Assembly: GCF_000143415.4 (NCBI RefSeq)
Contig: NW_003314558.1
Coordinates: 1 to 13,127 of the forward strand
From: Selaginella moellendorffii
Taxonomy: Eukaryota; Plantae; Lycopodiophyta
Direction of reading: 5' to 3'
Length of the DNA stretch: 13,127 nucleotides
In this document: in pieces, positions 1-13,127 of the stretch
How the letters are laid out: each line of letters starts with the position of its first letter
How positions within the stretch are numbered: position 1 is the stretch's first letter
Translations under genes and position numbers: made by a program
Notes under the pieces: generated by a model
Told to the model about the DNA's origin: nothing
What the model saw: the letters and a program-made list of their open reading frames with translations, nothing else
Databases searched by the model: none

Positions 1-168
1 TCTCGGGTTGTCATGCCAATGTATTTCCTTTCCCTTTAGTGAATTTTTCATTATAAATTTTCTCTAGTTTTTCCTCTTATCTGAGATTGCCATAGCTGAT
101 CTCTAGCATTCTTGAGTTCCACTGGATCAAGCAATGTGGAGTGCTTTTGGCTAATTGCAATTCCAAAA
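1..168 (+). mobile_element. 3' end of the preceding Penelope-like element copy (3' half of the hammerhead plus 3' tail)
   Basis: Matches 11390-11557 with one substitution seen. It starts at the UC of the GUC cleavage triplet and ends at a telomeric tract. Confidence 0.85.
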
Positions 169-196
169 CCCTAAACCCTAAACCCTAAACCCTAAA
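169..196 (+). repeat. Plant telomeric repeat tract (CCCTAAA)4
   Basis: Four perfect CCCTAAA units. Confidence 0.95.
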
Positions 197-614
197 AACT
201 GGACACATGAATGCTACAACCCTTTCCAACACCTTATGGACAAACCTTCAAGGAAACAAGGAACCAACTTAAGCTTAGCATAATGGACCACCATCGAGAA
301 TCCAGTCAAAGCTACTACAATGCTACTTCATGCAAGTAGACTAGCTTCACTATCAACCACTTTGGGGTTGATCATCATTTAACTAAGCAACTTCGTAAAC
401 ACATTGCTCATTATCACATGGATATGATACAAAATCACAATGACTTGATCATCAATTGAGCAACACCACGAGCAACACCCATGTCATTACTTCAAAGGTT
501 TATGTGAGCATCAAGTGCTAACTCAGTTCGGCAAAATGCAACATAAATGCCACACTCCACCAATAGAGATTTACAACACTGAACACCACCAACTTCAGCT
601 CCAGGACTGTTCCA

Positions 615-723
615 AGTGTCCGTAAAGACTAGTCGACAAGTAACTTTCGATACCCGAAGTCACATTCGTGACACTTGACTTCGGGTATCGAAAGTTACCT
701 GTCGACCAGTCCTTACGGACACT
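615..723. repeat. Fold-back inverted repeat, 48-bp arms and 13-nt loop, made of head-to-head LTR 5' ends
   Basis: 615-662 agtgtccgtaaagac...cccgaagtca versus 676-723 tgacttcggg...ggacact, 3 mismatches. 615-675 is also a direct repeat of 3613-3673. Confidence 0.9.
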
Positions 724-1350
724 CTTACCTTACTGCTATGATGGCAGGAGGTCTGTACTGCTGGATCCCTTTAGTAGCCCCTCTTGTGCTAGTGGAGTTA
801 ACTGGGCATTTCGAGTGTACTTAGACCGGACGAGCATAAGGACGGAATTCCTACGTGTTATTAGCTAAGCATACTTAGCCCGGTAAGGAGTTCCCGTCTC
901 GTTATGTCTTGCACTGGCTAGTGACAAGAACCCTCGCGTATTGAGATTAGTCCCTCAATATCGCTACATAATAGCTTACCGTGTCTGCCAAACACCCTCG
1001 CTATCATGCCCTTTGTGTTAGTTTCATTTCGGTCCCAAATGCTATTTATGGAAAGTGTCCAGATTTGGTCATTTGGCATATCTACGGAATGTAGAGATCG
1101 GTCTGAACACAATGGTGTTCGTCCCATGTCCAAATTCGCAATCTAAGGACATTCCATATTTAGTAAGTTTCGAGCTTGTCCTAGAGACTAACTCCTAATA
1201 CTAAAGGAGGCTTGGGGTGGAAGCCCAAAGCGTGTGTTCCTCAAGGGGGGGGGTTGTGGGGGGTTCCAAATGTATAGTAGGGATAGCGGGTAGGTCGGGC
1301 ATGGCCGACCAACCTAAGGCATAGTCTAGCTCCTACTTGCGTGCCTGTCC
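676..1350 (+). mobile_element. LTR-derived segment (+ copy, missing the first ~11 nt); left arm of an ~680-bp inverted repeat with 2971-3660
   Basis: Highly similar reverse complement of 2971-3660, whose end carries the TG start and polypurine tract (PPT). The LTR may extend beyond 1350. Confidence 0.7.
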
Positions 1351-1829
1351 ATTCAAATGTAGCACATGTGGTTTTGACCCTTTATCCTATGGTGATTTAC
1401 CATAGGATAACACCACAAAACGGAACCAAAACCCTTTTTGTGCCACGTGATAGATGCCACATGTCACATGCCACATGTCCATGCCACGTGTCCATAGGAA
1501 CCCGAGGTTCAAGGCCTTGGGCCACTGAACGAAGAAACGGTGCCAAACTCCTAAGCGTGAAGCCAAAGAGTGATAGAACCGAACCACGGAGCAACTCCCG
1601 AGCATACAGCCCAAGGAGTGAAGGGACAGGAGCCCAGAGCGACTTGGAATAGTCCTAGAGCAACCAGCATCCCAATGCCAGGACCAGCATGCAAAACGGA
1701 GCCAAACAGAGTCTAGCGCTATTTCGGCATACCGGTGGCCTAACTGTAAGGAACCAACTCGCCGAGGTGTCGTAGGCTAAAGGAACCCCGAAAGCATGAC
1801 CAAAATGACAAAGAGTTCATCGGATGGGA

Positions 1830-2105
1830 CCAAGTCGAAGATCGAGTCCAAGACCGACTCTAGGACCGAGTTCGAGATAGAGTCCGGAATCGAGTCTGAG
1901 ACCGACTCGGGGACCGAGTTCGAGTCCGAGTTCGAGACCGAGTTCGAGACGGAGTCCGAGATCCGAAATCGGGTCCGAGACCGAGTCCGAGGTCGAGTCC
2001 GAGGTCGGGTCCGAGATTGGGTCCGAGATCGAGTCCGTGATCGAGTCCGAACCCGAATCCGAAGTCGGATCCGAAATCGGGTCCGAGATCGAGCCAGAGA
2101 CTAAG
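1830..2105 (+). repeat. Degenerate hexamer tandem repeat (CCGAG core: GAGTCC/GAGACC/GAGTTC)
   Basis: Dense 6-bp periodicity; atccgaaatcgggtccgaga occurs twice (about 1961 and 2069). Gives spurious (ES/ET)n and (RV/RD)n ORFs. Confidence 0.9.
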
Positions 2106-2970
2106 TCCAAATACTAATACGGGTCAAGGGGTGAAAGCCCAAAGCGTGCGTCTCCCAGGGGGGGGGGGCTGCAGGGGGTTCCAAAAGTATAGTAGGGATA
2201 GTGAGGTCCAGGAACCAGTTTTGAAGGGACTCTCCAGTTGGGCTTCCAAACCGACTTGAGGTTGGGACTGGGACTAAGGGGCCTTGGGTGGGAGTGAGCA
2301 TGGACTTGGCTGGTGCCGGAGGGGCCATCCAAGGAAGTGCTCAAGAGCAGCTCCCACTCCCGAAAGGGAAACCGATTGCGGTGCTCCCGGCTCATGTGGA
2401 GTGGTGCCCCACTTGAGTACCATGCGGCTCATTGGTCCTCGCCCTTCCTAGGGGCTTGGGCCTTCCTTCGGGACGGAAGTGGGGGGCGAGAGGTACCCAT
2501 ACCGGGCCGTTAGGCCACGGTGTTTCGCCCCGGCGTCCCGAAGCAAGTGTTGCACTCAAGACTTGGGATTTAGAGGGTCCCATGATCAAGTCTTGTGGTA
2601 CCAAGGGATGTTAGGAACCTGGAAGCTTGGTGTGCTTGGCTGCTTGTGCTTGCGGGGAGTGTAGCCGAACCTTAAGTCCAGTCTAACCCGGGGAGGGGGA
2701 TTGGGAGTGATTTGGGAATCCGTGGAAGGATGGCTAACACTCCGTTGCCCGTGCAGTGAGTAGCTGAAACCAAGTAGGAGTTGGTACCATAGGCGAGAAC
2801 CTTGGCAAGGGAACTTAGCAAAAGCCAAGGCAGTGTTGGACGGATAGACGAGGTAAGCTGGCAAATTGGAAAGGAAAAATTTGTGGCTTACACTAACGCG
2901 AGGATATGGGTACTCCACCAACTAGCATGGAATGGAACTTGGGCTTAGACCCAAGCCGGACACAGAACAA

Positions 2971-3671
2971 GGACAGGCACGCAAGCGGGAACTAGACTAT
3001 GCCTCAGGTTGGTCAACCATGCCCGACCTACCCACTATCCCTACTATACATTTGGAACCCCCCACAGCCCCCCCCCCCCCCCCCCCCCCCCCTTGAGGAA
3101 CACACGCTTTGGGCTTTCACCCCAAGCCTCCCTTAGTATCAGGAGTTAGTCTCTGGGACAAGCTCGAAACTTACTAAATATGGAATGTCCCTAGATTGTG
3201 AATTTAGACACGGGACGAACACCATTGTGTTCAGACCGATCTCTACATTCCATAGATATGCCAAATGAGCAAATCTGGACACTTTCCATAAATAGCATTT
3301 AGGACTGAAATGAGACTAACACAAAGGGCATGATAGCGAGGGTGTTTGGCAAACACGGTAAGCTATCATGTAGCGATATTGAGGGACCAATCTCAATACG
3401 CGAGGGTTCTTGTCACTAGCTAGTGCAAGACATAACGAGACGGGAACTCCTTACCGGGCTAAGTATGCTTAGCTAATAACACGTAGGAATTCCGTCCTTA
3501 TGCTCGTCCGGTCTAAGTACACTCAAAATGCCCAGTTAACTCCACTAGCACAAGACAGACTGATAAAGGGTCCAGCAATACCGATCTCCTACCATCGTGG
3601 TAGTAAGGTAAGAGTGTCCGTAAGGACTGGTCGACAGGTAACTTTCGATACCCGAAGTCACATTCGCGACA
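2971..3671 (-). mobile_element. 5' portion of a 3' LTR of an LTR retrotransposon on the minus strand
   Basis: The minus strand reads purine tract then TGTCGCGAATGTGACTTCGGG starting at 3671. The distal LTR boundary was not determined. Confidence 0.65.
3068..3092 (+). repeat. Poly-C homopolymer (25 nt)
   Basis: Counted directly; the homologous positions are G9 (1245-1253) and G11 (2158-2168). Confidence 0.9.
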
Positions 3672-3684
3672 CTCTCCCCCCCCT
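3672..3684 (-). other. Polypurine tract preceding the minus-strand LTR
   Basis: ctctcccccccct on + is an all-purine tract on -, directly abutting TGT. Confidence 0.65.
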
Positions 3685-5547
3685 AGGGAAGATCGACATC
3701 CTCGTCGATGCATACTCGAGTCTAGAATACCACCAAGGAAACAACTCCAGAAAAAGTTCACGGTACTCACACTATGTGAGAAATGCACCAACTTAAATGA
3801 GTTAGGAGGCAACCTCTTTGTCTAACGCGGATGCGCTACCAGCTTAGACACCTTCCGGCCGTCGCCGACAAGGAAATGACCAACGGAGTCAGCCACCCTT
3901 GCTGCTCTGGGAGTCACCCAGCTTACAAAAGTGTGATACGCCCCTGCCCGCAAGGACATAGAGAGAGAAGCCAAAGGCCCCAACCCTCCTAAGCAAAGAA
4001 ACCAAACCCGTCGGTAAGGTTTAGATAGACTACTGTAAACAGACAGTTAGAGTTGTTTACATGGTCACGCCCTTTTAACGAAATAAGGAACATCGACAGA
4101 GAGGCGGGTTATGTGACCAGTCTACAGTAGCTACCCCATGACTAGAGATTTCAACATGCACACAAAGTGCCGAAGCCAGTCTGCTTATACTAGCCCAAAC
4201 TCAAAGATCAATAAATGGACAATATCAAAGTCATAGACAATGATATCTTAGAGTCTTAATAATCAATGAATATATCTTAGATTAGAACACAAAAGTATTC
4301 CAAGTAAGTTATCATCCGATAAACTAGTAGTAGAGTATAAGAACCACCAAGATCATCATAAGTGGTAAACATAGGATTCACCATCAAACAAAATTCAATA
4401 GCAAGTATATCATCAAGTAAACTCAATGATAAAGTTTAACTATTAAAGATTGCAGACAGAATGCCAAACAACTTACGAAAGATAACTCAAAGAACACAAA
4501 GTATCATTGACTGGCAAGCAAAATGCTCGCGAATGTATCACCTAAAGGAAATAACATCCCAATGGTTCAGAACTAACTCGAGCAACAATCAACAAAACAG
4601 AATGAATGTGGCAAGGCCAACAAACACTCGTTTATGCCAACTATCACGCTAGCTAATCCAAATAGATCCCAGTCAACAACACCAAGGAACTCAAGTTGTG
4701 TAAGTAAGTGTCAGCAACATTCTATTGATGTCTCAAACCCAAGAGACCAATCCAGAGCAAACCACAAAGAACATGTGGTATTGCGAAAAGCCAAAAGCCA
4801 TCAAAGAGAATAACTAACTATCACGAAAGATCATCAATCATCCCATCAATAAAGAGATGCATAATCATCGTATAAGAAAGAATCCACTACCCCAAAGAAT
4901 AGCGAATCATTCTATATCAACAATAATCAGGCAAAACTTTTTGATAAGGATAATCAACTATCCTAGATCACAGTCAATCATCACTAATGATTGCCAGATG
5001 CAAATACTAACTTCAATAGCGAAGCTAATGAGCGAAAATGCCTTCCCCAACAACTTCTAACCAATGGTCCACAAGCATGAAAGTTCAAGGAACCAAAAGC
5101 TCGAAGAAGCTTATAGCTAAGTCTTGCCTAATAATGATCACGAGTCTTGCATGAACTAACATTAATGCTAAAAAGAAATCATGGTACAACCCACAATATC
5201 CTCTTCAACACTTCCATAAGCTAAACTTCATAATGCCAAAGCTAATGAAGAGCAGATTTGCATCAATCCAAAAGCCAAGCATAATGAAACTATGCTCAAC
5301 AAGTGACCACTAAACGATCTTCCATGAATCCATCTATAGCAAGACGTAACTCACTTCATAACAAGCACAAGAAGAAACATTAATGATCGATATAGTCCAA
5401 CTCAAATCCAACAAGGATTCAAATGTTCCAATATCAATCACTAACTCTTCTGCTTGGAGAGTTAGCATAGTCCACGACTGAATCACTTTTCAAGGAAAAG
5501 TCAAAACTTAACCCCTACTAAATAATCTTGTCTAGAACACAACTAAG

Positions 5548-6493
5548 TTCCCTACTCCGAAGTGTGTGAATGATGTGCAGCGCTTCTTGGGCAAGGTGCA
5601 GTATCTCGGGCGTTTTGTGGATCATCTTTTTGATCGCACTGCACCATTGCGAGCGTTGCTGAAGTTATCAACATCATCTTTCATCTGGTCTCCGGATTGT
5701 GAGCGGGCGTTTGGGGATCTCAAAAAGTTATTGACAACTCCTCCGGTTTTGGCATATCCTGACTACACTCGACCTTTTATTTTGCGCGTGGATGCTTCTG
5801 ACATTGGTCTTGGAGGTGTGTTAATGCAAGAGAGCTCGAGTGTGCATAGTCAGTGCCATCCCATTACATATATAAGCCGTACATTACAACCAGCGGAGAT
5901 GAACTACTCCACGACAAAGAAGGAGTGTTTAGCAGCAGTTTGGGGTTTCGAGAAACTTCATGCATATCTACATGGTTCTCGGACATTACTTGAAGGTGAC
6001 CATGCTGCTGTTACTTCATTATTAAAGCGAAAGAACCTGGTTGGTCGTACTGCTCGGTGGGCTTTGAAGCTTCAGATATATGATTTTGATGTTGTTCACC
6101 GCCCAGGGAGTTCTATGGCTGATGCTGATGCCCTTTCTCGAGCTCCTCTTCCTTCTTCATTCTCTTCTCATGTTTCTGACGAGCCTGTCGTTCCAGCATC
6201 TGTGGATTTTCTAGACAAGGATTCTGTGCCGTCGGCGGTTATTATACTTGACGTTCAGTGTCCACAAGGTGCAGAGCAAGATCTATCGTCGCTTGATGAG
6301 GTTCGCAAGGCTCAAAAGATTGAGCCATGGATTCGAAGGCTTCGAGATGGGTTTCAGAATCTTGCATCACTTGCTGATGACTTGCCTTTCCAGCATTTAC
6401 ATTCTCAATATTGTCTTGAAGGTGGCCTTCTTTATTTTGTGGGGACAGATCCTAATGATCATTTACGGCTGGTGGTGCCTTCTATTTTTATTC
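5548..6493 (+). pseudogene. pol: Ty3/gypsy pol fragment: RT C-terminus/connection, RNase H and linker
   Basis: FPTPKCVNDVQRFLG, PPVLAYPDY, LRVDAS..GLGGVL, NYSTTKKECLA, EGDH, RWALKLQ, ADALSR. The RT catalytic core is absent. Confidence 0.92.
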
Positions 6494-6850
6494 ATGCCAG
6501 AGATTGTGCATGTGCAGCGGTTGAAATGCTTCATACAAAGGGATCAGGAGCAGTTAATACCATCTACAGATTCGCCGATGCCTCCTCCTGATGTTCCTCC
6601 AGATCCCGGCCCGTCTACAAGAGAACCCTGATGGTCTTCCATTATCCCGAGAGGGGGGGATGATGTGAGGGCCAAGTGTACGGTTACGATGCCGTATACT
6701 AATATTAGCGTAGTGGGATTTTGGTAGCCATTGGATTGGTTTCAATTCGGACCACTCGCTTCTGTATATAAGCTAGGGTTTTTGGGCTAATTGAGATGCA
6801 CATTTCTATATTTGATCATTTACGGCTGGTGGTGCCTTTTATTTTTATTC
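6456..6850 (+). repeat. 38-bp direct repeat (6456-6493 and 6813-6850) flanking the displaced segment
   Basis: tgatcatttacggctggtggtgcctt(c/t)tatttttattc, 1 mismatch. Confidence 0.92.
6494..6812 (+). mobile_element. Displaced 3' end of a gypsy element: integrase C-terminus, PPT and start of the 3' LTR
   Basis: PEIVHVQRLK...REP* (stop 6629-6631), PPT gagaggggggga 6649-6660, TG start at 6661 or 6664, TATATAA 6765-6771. Confidence 0.75.
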
Positions 6851-7312
6851 TGCGGTTTCTCCATGCCTACCATGATTCTCCTGTTCTAGGTGGGCATATG
6901 GGATATCGTCGTGTAATTGAGAAGCTACGCAGGTCTTTCTATTGGCCGGAGATGCGACGTGATATTATCCGGTATGTGCGTAGCTGCGTTTGGTGCCAAG
7001 CTCGTAATACTCCCCCTCGGGCTGCGGAAGGACGGTTGGAGTCAATTGCAGTTTCCCGTCCGTTTGAGTTGGTGGTGTTTGATCTTATGGGACCTTTTCC
7101 ACGGTCAACTGCTAGCAATGAGTATGTTATTATTGCTTCTGACTATTTGACTCGTTGGGTGGAAGTTGGTGCTCTTGCTAGTGCCTCTGCAACTGCTGTT
7201 GGATACTTCCTCCTCAATCGAGTGGTGTTCCAGCATTCTTGTCCAGAGCGGATTCTTTTGGATAATGGTCCCGCATTTATGGCTGAGGCGTTTCATGTTT
7301 TGACGTCTCGGT
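6813..7312 (+). pseudogene. pol: Ty3/gypsy integrase fragment (HHCC zinc finger plus first two Asp of DDE), 3'-truncated
   Basis: HDSPVLGGHMG, FYWPEM, YVRSCVWCQ, PFELVVFDLMGP, DYLTRW, DNGPAF. It breaks off before the catalytic Glu. Confidence 0.92.
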
Positions 7313-7667
7313 CATGCCGATGGTGATGGATGACGAGGTCAAGGGTAGGATTCGAGTAATACGACAGGCTCTGAAGCAATCGGTGGTGGTTCAATCGTTG
7401 GCTGCACTAGAGGGGGAAGGCATTCTTAGATGGTGGCGACAGCAGCTCATCGAGGATCTGGATTGGGACCCCACAGCATGGAAACGAGGAGCGAGGAGCT
7501 TCTTCTCCTTCGGCGTCAAGGAAGCAAGGGATGGTCTCTTGACCAGCAGGGAGGAGGCCCGAGGGGAGATCCCCAAGCTCTGGAAGAAATGGATCGAGCA
7601 AGGAGTTGAAGCAAATCAGGTGGTGGGCAACACGCTTGCGTTCTGGAAACTACCGGTACAGGAGAAA
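7313..7667 (+). pseudogene. Probable non-LTR (L1-like LINE) ORF2 fragment running into the start of a zf-RVT-type region
   Basis: Trp-rich open frame with FSFGVKEARDGL...LWKKW...FWKLPVQEK, resembling the FSVKSAY...W..W...P.K pattern of plant LINE ORF2. Cut by telomeric repeats. Recognised by eye only. Confidence 0.5.
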
Positions 7668-7685
7668 CCCCTAAACCCTAAAACC
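7665..7685 (+). repeat. Short telomeric tract (2 CCCTAAA units plus partial units)
   Basis: aaacccctaaaccctaaaacc at the junction between the LINE-like and gypsy pieces. Confidence 0.85.
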
Positions 7686-7973
7686 GTTTTGTGGATCATC
7701 TTTTTGATCGCACTGCACCATTGCGAGCGTTGCTGAAGTTATCAACATCATCTTTCATCTGGTCTCCGGATTGTGAGCGGGCGTTTGGGGATCTCAAAAA
7801 GTTATTGACAACTCCTCCGGTTTTGGCATATCCTGACTACACTCGACCTTTTATTTTGCGCGTGGATGCTTCTGACATTGGTCTTGGAGGTGTGTTAATG
7901 CAAGAGAGCTCGAGTGTGCATAGTCAGTGCCATCCCATTACATATATAAGCCGTACATTACAACCAGCGGAGA
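7685..7973 (+). repeat. 289-bp duplicate of gypsy pol 5611-5899
   Basis: cgttttgtggatcatc...ccagcggaga in both places, no differences seen; same translation DHLFDRTAPL...LQPAE. Confidence 0.95.
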
Positions 7974-7982
7974 CCCGGTTTA

Positions 7983-8138
7983 CCCTAAACCCTAAACCCT
8001 AAATCGCAGGATTGCAGCACTGCGGGGTGTCTTTGACCCTAAATGCCTAAACGACCCTAAACGCCTAAACGTGCCTAAATCCTAAACCCTAAAACCTAAA
8101 CCCTAAACCCTAAACCCTAAAACCCTAAACCCTAAACC
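7983..8138 (+). repeat. Interrupted telomeric tract capping the 5'-truncated PLE
   Basis: (CCCTAAA)3 at 7983-8003, a 33-nt non-telomeric spacer at 8004-8036, variant units (TGCCTAAA, CGACCCTAAA, CGCCTAAA, CGTGCCTAAA, TCCTAAA), then mostly perfect units to 8136. Confidence 0.95.
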
Positions 8139-8627
8139 AGTGGTGAACGTGACGTTACCCATGGACGGCAGGGAAACAAGCAGGGGCGGAATGTGGTTAC
8201 TGGGACTCCTCCCACCCATTCCGATGCCCCGGGTTTTTCTTCAAGGGGTCCCTTGCACCGGCAATCTCTAACCGTGCTTGGTTCCCAGCCAGCCATGACT
8301 GGCAGAGCTGGCCAACGCCAGTCTCGAGGAAACGGTCGACCCCCACGGTCCCAACCGAACTGGCCAAGCGGCCGAGGGCGCCAGACTACACCACGACCTC
8401 CTCCAGCAGCCCAACAACACCAGCCAACTCAGAACCAGAAACCACCTTCACCTCCCAGAGGACAAGAGATGCAGCCCTCACAGCACCACAACAACACCCC
8501 ACTCCACGAACGAACCCAACGCTATGGCTTGGGAAGAAACTCGCCTCCACAGCAACACCCGCACTCTCAGGTTACGGCAGTGCCTGTGGACAGAAAAGGC
8601 AAGGCAAAAGTTTCTGGCTACCTTTGA
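8139..8627 (+). CDS. C-terminal remnant of PLE ORF1 (Q/P/R/G-rich, low complexity), 5'-truncated
   Basis: The frame is open from the telomeric tract (last stop TAA 8133-8135) to TGA 8625-8627, and it overlaps the RT frame, which is -1 relative to it. Confidence 0.6.
   Translation, partial: SGERDVTHGRQGNKQGRNVVTGTPPTHSDAPGFSSRGPLHRQSLTVLGSQPAMTGRAGQRQSRGNGRPPRSQPNWPSGRGRQTTPRPPPAAQQHQPTQNQKPPSPPRGQEMQPSQHHNNTPLHERTQRYGLGRNSPPQQHPHSQVTAVPVDRKGKAKVSGYL
8171..8230 (+). promoter_or_regulatory. Candidate programmed -1 ribosomal frameshift signal (slippery G GGA AAC, 5-nt spacer, stem-loop)
   Basis: The heptamer 8171-8177 is phased to ORF1. Stem GGGGC/GCCCC plus GGAAUG/CAUUCC plus inner UGGGA/UCCCA spans 8183-8230. 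The -1 frame has no stop from 8153 to the RT stop. Confidence 0.7.
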
Positions 8628-10471
8628 TTGCCCCGCATGAAGCTTTACTTCATTTTGCTGGCAATCAAAAAGTTTCCCAGCTAGAAAATAGAGTGGATAT
8701 TGGTGCTGTTCACAATTTGTCTTCTTGCATGTTGAGTGCCGCTGAAAAGCGCCTCCTTGCTCTTGGGCTCTCATTCATTCCTAATCCAGTGCCTCTCACG
8801 GCCAAAAAGATTATGGAATGCTTAGATGACTTTCAACGCTCAGTCTGTCTTCGTCATTCGTTTAAGGACAGCAACAGTCTTATACCAGAGTTTCGGGTTC
8901 CCAACCCAAACTTTGATCCTCCCCCTGCTTCCTGGCACATGGAGTCACGAGTTGCCCGCATTCGAGAGCACCTTCTCCAACGTCTTTCCTGTTGTAAAAG
9001 ACCTCGATCTTTTCTAAGAGGATGGAGACGTGATGCAGTCCTTGCGCTGCGACACGTTCATAGTATTGTGATTAAGCCAGCCGACAAAAACCTCGGCGTA
9101 GTTGTTCTGGACCGCACGTGGTACATTCAAGAGGCTATGCGCCAACTCAATGATCCTCTTGTCTACAAGAGAGTTGAGTCGATTCCACATCAACCCATGC
9201 ATGAGCGCCTCCTCGAACTTCTCCTGAAGTATAAATCTTGCTCGTGGCTGGACAAGAACACAGCCAAGTACCTCACCACTTTGCCCTCACCTCCACGTAA
9301 AGCTTGTTTGTTGTATTTTCTTCCAAAAATACATAAGCAGCCAATTCGTGGGAGACCAATTGCTAGCTATGTTGGCTACATTTGGGAGCCACTTGCAAAA
9401 TGGCTTCACCGCCAACTTTTTGGCATTCTCCTCCAACAGGAAACCTTTCTTATGGACTCCCACACCCTCCTTCATGATCTTCATAAACAACAGCTCCCAA
9501 AAGACTGCCTCCTCTTCACTTTTGATGACGAGTCGCTCTACCCGAGCATTCCCACACGTGAAGGGCTCTATCGCCTCCATAAATTTGTATATACAAATTT
9601 TGGAGATTCAATGCAAGCACGCTTTATCATGGCTGCTGCAGGACTCATCCTTGAACACAATTATGTTGAGTTCGATGGGAGTTATTTCCTTCAAATCCGA
9701 GGCACTGCTATGGGGTCAAACTTTGCTGTGGTGTATGCTTGCCTTTTTCTTTGCTCCCTCGAGGACGAGTTTAAGGCCACCTCTCCTAAATGGCCAATAT
9801 ATCTTAAGAGATATATTGACGATGGTGTCGGAATTTGGGATGGATCAAAAGAGAGCTTGGAATCTTGGTTGGCTAGCTATGGAAGCCTCTGCAATTCTAT
9901 AAAGATCACCTCAGTGATCTCATTTGAATCTATGGATATTCTAGACATCCATTTTTTCAAAGGCCCACGCTTTGAGAAATGCAGGTGCCTAGACTCCACC
10001 ACCTTTCAAAAGCCACTAAATGCATACCAATATCTTCCATGGAACTCAACGCATCCTCGACACCAAAAGATTGCCTTCATTCGTGCTGAACTTCGGCGTT
10101 ACCTCCTACGAGAGAGTAACCCTGAGAGCTTCTGTGCAATTCGCAAGCTTTTCTATACTCGTCTCCGTGCACGTGGATACCCAAGAGCCTTCCTTATTGA
10201 AGCTTTCCGGACAATCCATTATACGGACCGAGATAATGTGCTCTACTCTCCATCACGCAAATCCAGTAGCAATAGTCTACAGGCCCCCCTCATTTTCAAG
10301 CTGCCTTATACTCTCCATAGTGCAGCACTTGATGTGGGGAACACCCTAAACCCTAAACAGGTGATTTCTGAAGTTCCATCAGACTCACTCCCCAGAGTGA
10401 TCACATGCTGGACACGGTCCCCAAACCTTGCTTCCCACTTGGTTTCAGCGAGACTCCCACCATATGGATAA
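8624..10471 (+). CDS. Penelope-like element reverse transcriptase lacking GIY-YIG endonuclease (frame open from 8153; probably made as an ORF1-RT frameshift fusion)
   Basis: VHNLS..L...E..LL.LGLSFIP, IVIKPADKNLGVVV, LYFLPKIHK..IRGRPI, FDDESLYPSIP, QIRGTAMGS, RYIDD (YIDD 9812-9823), thumb KP...QYLPWNSTHP, RLRARGYP; ends NLASHLVSARLPPYG*. Confidence 0.93.
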   Translation: MIAPHEALLHFAGNQKVSQLENRVDIGAVHNLSSCMLSAAEKRLLALGLSFIPNPVPLTAKKIMECLDDFQRSVCLRHSFKDSNSLIPEFRVPNPNFDPPPASWHMESRVARIREHLLQRLSCCKRPRSFLRGWRRDAVLALRHVHSIVIKPADKNLGVVVLDRTWYIQEAMRQLNDPLVYKRVESIPHQPMHERLLELLLKYKSCSWLDKNTAKYLTTLPSPPRKACLLYFLPKIHKQPIRGRPIASYVGYIWEPLAKWLHRQLFGILLQQETFLMDSHTLLHDLHKQQLPKDCLLFTFDDESLYPSIPTREGLYRLHKFVYTNFGDSMQARFIMAAAGLILEHNYVEFDGSYFLQIRGTAMGSNFAVVYACLFLCSLEDEFKATSPKWPIYLKRYIDDGVGIWDGSKESLESWLASYGSLCNSIKITSVISFESMDILDIHFFKGPRFEKCRCLDSTTFQKPLNAYQYLPWNSTHPRHQKIAFIRAELRRYLLRESNPESFCAIRKLFYTRLRARGYPRAFLIEAFRTIHYTDRDNVLYSPSRKSSSNSLQAPLIFKLPYTLHSAALDVGNTLNPKQVISEVPSDSLPRVITCWTRSPNLASHLVSARLPPYG

Positions 10472-10493
10472 GCTACCTTGGACTTGCCCAAAG

Positions 10494-10812
10494 CTACCTC
10501 TTACAAACTCGGAGTGGAATATTCCTGGAATATTCTGATGCTTTGAAATATTTTTTTTGAGGTTAGCTATTAAACATGATGAGGAACAATTAGGACGTGC
10601 TGCATGGCTGATATCCATCACCATCACCGTTCACAATATACTGCTATGAATAACCTACCTCTTGCAAAGTCGGAGTGGAATATTCCTGAAATATTCTGAT
10701 GCTTTGAAATAACTTTTGAGGTTGGCTATTAAAAATGATAAGGAACAATTAGGACGTGCTGCATGGCTGATATCCATCACCATCACCGTTCACAATATAC
10801 TGCTATGAATAA
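10494..10812 (+). repeat. Tandem duplication of ~160 bp in the PLE 3' UTR
   Basis: 10494-10653 and 10655-10812: ctacctctt.caaa.tcggagtggaatattcc...tgctatgaataa twice. Confidence 0.92.
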
Positions 10813-10853
10813 GCTTCACACCACTAAGCTTGTTTATTTCCTATTTCAGTCTT

Positions 10854-11105
10854 TGAAATTTTCAACTTTTTTGAAATTTCAATTGATTATTATATCTTGT
10901 GCCTTGCACAGTGATATCATTGAAGTTTACATCTATTCTCTACAAACCAAATTTGAGGGAAATATACTGAGCTAATTAAAATCACCACCACCTCTTCTCT
11001 GAAATTTTTCTGAAATTTCAAGGGACTATCACATCTTGTGCCTTGCACAAAGATGTCATTAAAACTCATATTTTATTTTCTACAAACCAAAATTTGTAGA
11101 AAATA
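10854..11105 (+). repeat. Older diverged duplication of ~110 bp in the 3' UTR
   Basis: tgaaatttcaa...atcttgtgccttgcaca...tctacaaaccaaa at about 10854-10964 and 11000-11105. Confidence 0.75.
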
Positions 11106-11121
11106 AACTCATAATAATAGC

Positions 11122-11157
11122 AATCAATACCACCATCATAATCAATACCACCATCAT
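11122..11157 (+). repeat. 18-bp perfect tandem duplication
   Basis: aatcaataccaccatcat twice. Confidence 0.9.
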
Positions 11158-11342
11158 AATATATAAGATAAGTGGCTAGTGACAACCAAGTCTGTGAGGC
11201 TGTTCCTCCAAGCTTGCCTGCTCACACTCCACCACAAGATCTTTGAAGTTCTAAAACAGTTGGATATTTTCAAAGCTTCTTGAATATTCTTAAGGCATCT
11301 GGGTAAAAATAGAGGAAAAGAGGGGCTAGGTTAGACCATTTT

Positions 11343-11404
11343 CATGGCGACTACACCCGGCTGATGAGTCCCAAAAAGGACGAAACCGGTCTCGGGTTGT
11401 CATG
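11343..11404 (+). ncRNA. Type I hammerhead ribozyme (minimal PLE type, palindromic stem III)
   Basis: Stem I ACCCGG/UCGGGU extended by CAUGGCG/UGUCAUG; CUGAUGA 11361-11367; stem II GUCC-caaaaa-GGAC; GAAA 11382-11385; stem III ACCGGU; cleavage triplet GUC 11389-11391. Confidence 0.93.
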
Positions 11405-13127
11405 CCAATGTATTTCCTTTCCCTTTAGTGAATTTTTCATTATAAAGTTTCTCTAGTTTTTCCTCTTATCTGAGATTGCCATAGCTGATCTCTAGCATTC
11501 TTGAGTTCCACTGGATCAAGCAATGTGGAGTGCTTTTGGCTAATTGCAATTCCAAAACCCTAAACCCTAAACCCTAAACCGGTAAACCCTAAACCCTAAA
11601 CCTAAAACCCTAAACCCTAAACCCTAAAAACTGGACACATGAATGCTACAACCCTTTCCAACACCTTATGGACAAACCTTCAAGGAAACAAGGAACCAAC
11701 TTAAGCTTAGCATAATGGACCACCATCGAGAATCCAGTCAAAGCTACTACAATGCTACTTCATGCAAGTAGACTAGCTTCACTATCAACCACTTTGGGGT
11801 TGATCATCATTTAACTAAGCAACTTCGTAAACACATTGCTCATTATCACATGGATATGATACAAAATCACAATGACTTGATCATCAATTGAGCAACACCA
11901 CGAGCAACACCCATGTCATTACTTCAAAGGTTTATGTGAGCATCAAGTGCTAACTCAGTTCGGCAAAATGCAACATAAATGCCACACTCCACCAATAGAG
12001 ATTTACAACACTGAACACCACCAACTTCAGCTCCAGGACTGTTCCAAGTGTCCGTAAAGACTAGTCGACAAGTAACTTTCGATACCCGAAGTCACATTCG
12101 TGACACTTGACTTCGGGTATCGAAAGTTACCTGTCGACCAGTCCTTACGGACACTCTTACCTTACTGCTATGATGGCAGGAGGTCTGTACTGCTGGATCC
12201 CTTTAGTAGCCCCTCTTGTGCTAGTGGAGTTAACTGGGCATTTCGAGTGTACTTAGACCGGACGAGCATAAGGACGGAATTCCTACGTGTTATTAGCTAA
12301 GCATACTTAGCCCGGTAAGGAGTTCCCGTCTCGTTATGTCTTGCACTGGCTAGTGACAAGAACCCTCGCGTATTGAGATTAGTCCCTCAATATCGCTACA
12401 TAATAGCTTACCGTGTCTGCCAAACACCCTCGCTATCATGCCCTTTGTGTTAGTTTCATTTCGGTCCCAAATGCTATTTATGGAAAGTGTCCAGATTTGG
12501 TCATTTGGCATATCTACGGAATGTAGAGATCGGTCTGAACACAATGGTGTTCGTCCCATGTCCAAATTCGCAATCTAAGGACATTCCATATTTAGTAAGT
12601 TTCGAGCTTGTCCTAGAGACTAACTCCTAATACTAAAGGAGGCTTGGGGTGGAAGCCCAAAGCGTGTGTTCCTCAAGGGGGGGGGTTTGTGGGGGGTTCC
12701 AAATGTATAGTAGGGATAGCGGGTAGGTCGGGCATGGCCGACCAACCTAAGGCATAGTCTAGCTCCTACTTGCGTGCCTGTCCATTCAAATGTAGCACAT
12801 GTGGTTTTGACCCTTTATCCTATGGTGATTTACCATAGGATAACACCACAAAACGGAACCAAAACCCTTTTTGTGCCACGTGATAGATGCCACATGTCAC
12901 ATGCCACATGTCCATGCCACGTGTCCATAGGAACCCGAGGTTCAAGGCCTTGGGCCACTGAACGAAGAAACGGTGCCAAACTCCTAAGCGTGAAGCCAAA
13001 GAGTGATAGAACTGACCACGGAGCACTCCCGAGCATACAGCCCAAGGAGTGAAGGGACAGGAGCCCAGAGCGACTTGGAATAGTCCTAGAGCAACCAGCA
13101 TCCCAATGCCAGGACCAGCATGCAAAA
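11390..13127 (+). repeat. Copy 2 of the long direct repeat (matches 1-1696), including the LTR fold-back at about 12047-12155
   Basis: Near-identical sequence and duplicated ORF-track translations (668/12100, 918/12350, 1341/12774). Confidence 0.97.
11558..11628 (+). repeat. Telomeric tract of 10 units including variants CCGGTAAA and CCTAAAA
   Basis: 71 bp, versus 28 bp at the homologous site 169-196. Confidence 0.95.

Follow-up and report, generated by a model that had tools for sequence, protein, structure and literature searches.

Gypsy and LINE fragments joined to telomere repeats beside a Penelope-like element of Selaginella moellendorffii: a possible case of foreign RNAs copied onto a chromosome tip

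The stretch of DNA analysed here, referred to throughout as the window, makes up the whole of scaffold GL377862.1 (13,127 bp) in assembly GCA_000143415.2 of Selaginella moellendorffii. It harbours a Penelope-like element (PLE) with an open reading frame (ORF) for a reverse transcriptase (RT) and, to the left of this element, five fragments of other retroelements, designated pieces A to E, that belong to the gypsy and long interspersed nuclear element (LINE) classes and are in part separated by short runs of telomere repeats (Table 1). The locus is tentatively regarded as a stratified chromosome end, former or current, whose G-strand 3' end may have been extended stepwise leftwards. The foreign pieces themselves would, on the reading that we favour with some hesitation, have been added by RNA-templated synthesis, copied by a reverse transcriptase, and this is supported by the presence of an active-looking RT at the same chromosome end. 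DNA-level repair copying explains the co-oriented pieces about as well.

RNA templates are favoured by the uniform sense orientation of the pieces on the C-strand, by a content of retroelements only, with open frames, and by internal starts with almost no homology. As an earlier note on this DNA had claimed, the window contains five pieces of which every coding one is, in common with the PLE, sense on the plus (C-rich) strand and none is a complete element, a description borne out by ORFs, domains and alignments. The probability that all of them would share the orientation of the PLE by chance ranges from 1/8, if three independent units are counted, to 1/32, if five are. The plant telomere unit, also found by Tandem Repeats Finder, lies on the plus strand as CCCTAAA in six tracts, and near-exact 14-mers of this unit number 18 in the window, against 0.01 expected by chance. 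Two further PLE loci of the same genome, L002 and L003, served for comparison, as did L001, which holds a copy of the dispersed repeat X that lies left of the pieces. L003 is the end of scaffold GL377664.1 and opens with a true terminal telomere, a C-strand repeat of 362 nt (1-362), and the same PLE is sense there on the strand that bears this terminal repeat; this agreement places the tip of the window's chromosome to the left. The G-strand 3' end therefore grows leftwards in the window, and cDNA primed there is expected to be sense on the plus strand. Checked against the terminal telomere of L003, the earlier argument that the polarity of the pieces is the one expected of synthesis primed by the G-rich overhang proved correct.

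The retroelement fragments that the earlier note had recognized are real, but they do not derive from five sources. Pieces A and C are contiguous in their parent element, with an overlap of 38 nt (6456-6493 = 6813-6850, 97% identity), and piece B is set between them, flanked by this overlap as a direct repeat. Together with the identity of piece E to part of piece A, this overlap assigns four of the five pieces to a single gypsy lineage, and the foreign material is, as judged from its sequence, one gypsy element and one LINE. Piece D gave no Pfam match and a blank Atlas look-up, and its LINE identity comes from an exhaustive protein search, in which one relative was found (E 8e-46, 70% identity); the alignment covers residues 467-582 of a LINE protein of S. 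moellendorffii, 739 aa long, with RVT_1 and zf-RVT domains. The later searches, for RNA families, proteins and alignments, covered the window from 1 to 8080 and from 8200 onwards, and the comparison with the other loci took in the whole window. Neither introns nor poly(A) were found in the pieces, and there is no gene or clearly non-repeat sequence among them. Two ORFs that span junctions, 7314-7733 and 6796-7323, are on record in no other assembly.

Table 1. Features of the window in order of position
Feature	Position	Strand	Remarks
Telomeric tract, CCCTAAA x4.4	166..196	+	caps left end of repeat X; 3' tail of upstream PLE (1-165) joined to it
Repeat X, non-coding dispersed repeat	197..5546	+	A-rich on + strand; internal fold-back; 1.15-kb insert
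Piece A, gypsy pol: RT end, RNase H, integrase start	5548..6493	+	RT_RNaseH_2, E 1e-34; 316 open codons
Piece B, end of gypsy pol and start of long terminal repeat (LTR)	6494..6812	+	last 44 pol codons; stop 6629-6631; polypurine tract 6650-6660; first ~150 nt of LTR with TATA-like motif
Piece C, gypsy integrase: zinc finger and most of core	6813..~7313	+	zinc finger E 2e-19; 169 open codons
Piece D, internal L1-type LINE ORF2 fragment between RT and zf-RVT	7314..7667	+	118 open codons
Telomeric mini-tract between D and E	7668..7684	+	17 nt
Piece E, gypsy RNase H, telomere repeats on both sides	7685..7973	+	289 nt; 289/289 identical to 5611-5899 inside A
Nine non-canonical bases, then three telomere repeats	7974..8003	+	
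Truncated PLE-family 3' docking cassette (~70 nt; 8004 to ~8075), then degenerate, then perfect telomere repeats	8004..8138	+	
PLE, 5'-truncated, endonuclease-less	8139..11554	+	ORF1 remnant 8193-8627; RT ORF 8624/8729-10471; non-coding tail with hammerhead ribozyme 11342-11416
Telomeric tract joined to PLE 3' end, after which the unit restarts	11555..11628	+	

The joins between the pieces share little or no sequence. Where both partners can be read, at A|B, at B|C and at both ends of E, the overlap is 0-1 nt, and at D|telomere it is 3 nt. Telomere repeats follow the 3' (right) ends of pieces D and E, at the joins 7667|7668 and 7973|7974, whilst the other pieces are connected by direct joins; the position of these repeats implies that D and E, or the DNA of which they are part, were joined onto a telomere. 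The right end of piece D lies just short of the zf-RVT domain and abuts the telomere repeats with an AAA overlap and without poly(A), so that a 3'-truncated LINE sequence lacking poly(A) is joined to telomere repeats, which are features of endonuclease-independent LINE insertion. The right end of piece B, considered as a candidate 3' end of a gypsy RNA, falls ~40 nt past the TATA-like motif, with no A-run present. Two other origins were considered and rejected: piece B is not a nested insertion, having no complete element ends and a duplication of 38 nt rather than 4-6 nt, and breakage of a resident element followed by healing does not apply to D and E, whose telomere repeats lie on their 3' side.

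On the reading favoured here, the same G-strand 3' end would have been extended twice on non-cognate templates. The first addition would have comprised 289 nt of gypsy pol (piece E), onto which 17 nt of telomere repeat were placed as a cap. The second chain would have begun inside the LINE ORF2 (piece D) and undergone three template switches with overlaps of 0-3 nt, passing to the gypsy integrase (C), to the pol end, polypurine tract and LTR (B) and lastly to gypsy pol (A), which it would have entered 38 nt downstream of its departure point. The whole 11.43-kb block would later have been duplicated in tandem by a DNA-level event. The chain led by piece D is no less likely to have been copied in cis by the ORF2 protein of the LINE itself than by the PLE RT; piece E would require action in trans, by the PLE RT or by a gypsy RT. 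In more general terms, it is possible, though somewhat less likely than not, that a telomere-tip RT (the PLE RT or the LINE ORF2 protein) in a telomerase-bearing land plant occasionally copies unrelated transposon RNAs and jumps between templates, after which telomerase re-caps the end.

For the resident PLE family, synthesis primed at the telomere is clearly evident. Its 615-aa ORF has 935 relatives, and the best matches listed carry the PLE-linked domains PF28514 and PF26215, some of them with RVT_1 in addition; against the local Pfam set the RT ORF gave a weak RVT_1 match only. The GIY-YIG domain (PF01541) occurs in endonuclease-bearing relatives of the same list but not in P0002, a close Selaginella protein, and no ORF of at least 80 aa was found downstream of the RT stop. 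In the non-coding tail, the Hammerhead_HH9 model matches positions 11342-11416 on the plus strand with 45.9 bits (E 1e-9), which is below the Rfam gathering score of 52. The 3' end of the element is joined to reverse-complement telomere repeats, truncated copies are telomere-capped and, in the window and at the true chromosome end of L003, the element is sense on the C-strand. By these characteristics, the resident PLE belongs to the endonuclease-less, telomere-attaching kind. Three copies with open RT frames are 98% identical, with a ratio of nonsynonymous to synonymous change (pN/pS) of ~0.3, and the family looks active. The copy at L002 is full-length and includes a 902-aa ORF1 (coiled-coil-like), by comparison with which the PLE of the window is 5'-truncated.

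The stretch adjoining the PLE on its left, described in the earlier note as a telomeric tract, does contain telomere repeats, although the part from 8004 to ~8075 is a truncated docking cassette. L002 and L003 between them have nine copies of this 3' docking cassette of the PLE family, the end of which passes from degenerate into perfect telomere repeats; several of the copies are ultra-short and 5'-truncated, each with a telomere cap. Such truncated copies, lying between telomere repeats, directly record abortive rounds of telomere-primed reverse transcription in alternation with telomerase. The mechanism put forward in the earlier note, telomere-primed reverse transcription with telomerase capping, thus holds for the PLE family's own RNAs, as seen from capped cassette copies in the window and at two further loci, and is no more than plausible for foreign RNAs. 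Taken as a whole, the earlier interpretation is partly supported, its polarity and the 3' telomere joins of D and E having stood, whilst the PLE RT is one candidate copier among others.

Several further observations concern the PLE family and its junctions. In the window and in L003, the PLE copies are 5'-truncated at points that differ by only 15 nt and lie a short way upstream of the ORF1/RT overlap (window 8139; L003 ~9365; L002 9394-9409 and 7191-9899); an RT stop or a subgenomic start may account for this. The RT gene of two PLE families contains, near its C-terminus, an in-frame telomere repeat of 16 nt that encodes the peptide NTLNPKQ (window 10343-10358; L002 3318-3333 and 11616-11629; L003 330-365, 7138 and 11579-11592). 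At L003 the terminal telomere passes directly into the motif as carried by a 5'-truncated copy; it looks as though cDNAs with their ends here could serve telomerase as ready-made substrates. A protein search with the PLE2 tail ORF returned only L002 and L003. On the G-strand beside the 3' end of piece E (window 7968-8003, minus strand), the sequence GGTTTA-GGG-TAAACC forms a perfect six-base snap-back hairpin, which suggests that the telomere end may have folded back and primed itself ahead of the copying of the gypsy piece. The tracts at 11578-11590 of the window, at 12838 of L003 and at 14052 of L002 include a related, unusual repeat unit with CCGGT in it. Deeper inside the chromosome, short telomere tracts also occur in the opposite (G-strand) orientation, at 17779-17806 of L003 and 16001-16014 of L001.

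The strongest rival to RNA copying is DNA-templated repair, by break-induced or microhomology-mediated replication with short template switches, in which no foreign RNA was copied at all; this remains a serious contender, if a rather doubtful one. An eroded end would have invaded DNA close by, on its own chromatid or on the sister, and copied 289 nt of piece A to yield piece E, received a brief telomerase cap, and then invaded piece D and copied processively leftwards, giving the tandem 11.43-kb unit, so that X|A|B|C|D would be older resident transposon debris. DNA-level copying did occur here. Positions 1-1696 of the window recur at 11390-13127 with a period of ~11.43 kb, and the segment 11629-13127 is 99.7% identical to 197-1696, differing by one mismatch and three single-base gaps, whilst the telomere tracts are 31 and 74 nt long. 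From this repetition of the scaffold ends it follows that the 11.43-kb unit is present in tandem, or that the assembly wrapped around within an array of such units. Given a tandem duplication at 99.7% identity, one or more of the junctions within the unit must have been made at the DNA level; the junction of the duplication itself is either X|A or telomere|D. Repeat X, moreover, is truncated at both ends, being broken at 5546 and near 208, and is 89% identical to, and permuted relative to, the copy at L001, which indicates that DNA-level rearrangement happened here anyway; its join to piece A at 5547 has no telomere repeat, and X is not telomere-bounded on the right.

A number of these facts weigh directly against RNA-templated addition. 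The exact donor of piece E lies in cis, 2,074 nt away and in the same orientation, and templated DNA repair explains this without coincidence; both supposed invasions, indeed, fall within one 2-kb donor region, and the 3-nt overlap at D|telomere is also in keeping with repair. The tandem duplication is itself DNA-level copying and its junction could be telomere|D, which would make D-C-B-A older resident DNA: an eroded end would then have invaded at D and copied leftwards from there, leaving only E as a short templated patch. The series of five pieces, furthermore, reduces to two priming events, E and the D-C-B-A chain, with four pieces from one gypsy lineage. As D and E start internally and without poly(A), RNA copying has to invoke broken RNAs or internal priming. 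A word-based protein search with the 316-aa query from piece A did not bring up the parent gypsy, no match exceeding 51% identity, although the length filter of this search excludes full polyproteins and the blank says little. At L002 and L003, the two other loci to which the comparison of recurrence and orientation extended, every identified piece with telomere repeats on both sides is cognate, and no foreign piece flanked in this way was found. L002 does contain a foreign piece, a gypsy RT fragment of ~285 nt (14073-14357) that is sense on the C-strand and telomere-capped on the left only, and L003 contains a 5'-truncated LINE (12868-15966), likewise sense on the C-strand and left-capped only, which ends in poly(A) followed by ordinary non-telomeric DNA. 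For such left-only capping, ordinary breakage plus healing suffices.

DNA repair in its turn leaves unexplained why the pieces are co-oriented, open-frame and incomplete, without target duplications, and why there is a 38-nt back-step at piece B. Most junctions have overlaps of 0-1 nt, which is low for microhomology-mediated copying, and the uniform sense polarity must be put down to chance.

A further alternative, which we consider improbable, is that free double-stranded fragments of retroelement cDNA or DNA were captured by end joining, that is, ligated to an uncapped end that was then healed by telomerase, in parallel with the capture of Ty1 cDNA at yeast breaks. The retroelement-only content and the junction overlaps of 0-3 nt fit this proposal, and the reverse transcription of LTR elements is known to give rise to aberrant gypsy cDNAs that are rearranged internally, as A-B-C may be. 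Ligation is, however, blind to orientation, yet all the pieces are co-oriented (the chance of 1/8 to 1/32 given above), and LINEs normally have no free cDNA, yet piece D leads the chain.

No more credible, in our estimation, is a composite resembling the Terminons of rotifers, in which X, the pieces and the PLE, 11.43 kb in all, would form one retro-unit that is transcribed and added back to telomeres as a single RNA; the pieces would be co-oriented cargo and their first arrival a separate question. The head-to-tail arrangement of the unit, the telomeric tracts of different length between its copies and the shared 5' join at 197 are consistent with such a unit, and co-oriented cargo has been described for rotifer Terminons (PMC5537684). 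Against it, the pieces do not accompany the other two copies of the PLE, at L002 and L003; only one neighbouring repeat of the unit is present, in one small scaffold; the cargo consists of fragments rather than working genes; and a DNA-level tandem duplication explains the same facts.

An assembly artefact, in which repeats were misjoined in a small, unplaced, Sanger-era scaffold of a two-haplotype assembly, is highly improbable: the scaffold is only 13 kb long and its two ends repeat each other, but the D|telomere|E|telomere joins span <400 nt, inside single Sanger reads, the end copies differ as real copies do (by one mismatch, three single-base gaps and tract length), and 2024 sequencing runs contain up to half of the sampled words of 5400-8300, whichever part of it these may represent.

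Repeat X and its surroundings show some features of their own. The 1.15-kb insert is a non-coding mobile element with a 12-nt satellite that is found with 97-98% identity at three subtelomeric loci and in both orientations (window 1745-2892; L002 2127-3273, minus strand; L003 14176-15322, inside a LINE). Inverted repeat arms of ~700 nt (window 615-1350 and 2971-3673), 91-95% identical, surround a centre of 1.6 kb. A near-perfect hairpin of 109 nt at 615-723 weakly resembles MIR2871 (35.6 bits, where the gathering score is 99), and a run of 25 C residues (C25) occupies positions 3068-3092.

Synthesis primed at the telomere by the PLE family itself has well-described counterparts. For the endonuclease-deficient PLEs Athena and Coprina (Gladyshev and Arkhipova 2007), two reviews, PMC8557442 and PMC5537684, describe reverse transcription primed at the telomere together with capping. 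In common with the PLE of the window, they possess an endonuclease-less RT, a hammerhead ribozyme near the 3' end and a 3' end placed on reverse-complement telomere repeats, and their 5'-truncated, telomere-capped copies form head-to-tail arrays that are sense on the C-strand. Unlike these elements, for which the same two reviews describe additions of their own RNAs only, the window has gypsy and LINE fragments, without the docking cassette, between telomere tracts and in the same polarity. PLE additions with capping are thus the known part; the new part, which is plausible, would be the copying of non-cognate templates from a plant telomere end.

Endonuclease-independent L1 insertion at chromosome ends (work of 2002 and 2007) is reviewed in PMC4700185. 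There, as may have happened in the window, LINE cDNA starts at a chromosome end rather than at a nick; piece D correspondingly leads its chain and is 3'-truncated. The events in the primary papers are reportedly often 3'-truncated, without poly(A) and accompanied by extra cDNA at the junction. Those events, however, were obtained in repair-deficient cultured mammalian cells, whereas the window would represent a natural event in a plant germline, with switches to gypsy templates and telomerase capping.

The co-oriented cargo of bdelloid rotifer Terminons (Arkhipova et al. 2017; reviewed in PMC5537684) is associated with large telomeric units that, in common with the window, have an Athena-type RT at one end and extra co-oriented, telomere-bounded sequences. 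Terminon cargo, in contrast, comprises whole ORFs in many copies, whilst that of the window comprises transposon fragments in one tandem pair only. Y'-Ty1 chimeras have also been described in telomerase-negative yeast survivors (Maxwell et al. 2004, reviewed in PMC4700185). In these chimeras and in Ty1 cDNA capture, as is proposed for the window, an LTR-element RT copies or co-copies other RNAs, the products reside at chromosome ends and the chimeras arise by template switching; the yeast products, however, enter by recombination or end joining without telomerase and are not primed from a telomere 3' end.

The significance of the locus depends on which templates were used. Were the DNA-repair explanation correct, the window would be an ordinary, though neat, case of break-induced copying and healing at an eroded end. 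If RNA templates were used, it would constitute a natural, germline-fixed record of a telomere-associated RT using non-cognate RNAs in a plant. Such a record would tie together telomere extension by PLEs, endonuclease-independent LINE insertion at uncapped ends, which has so far been seen in mutant mammalian cells, and the origin of the co-oriented cargo in giant telomeric elements. It would also offer a concrete mechanism by which subtelomeres collect transposon fragments, these regions being, in that event, partly written from transposon transcripts.

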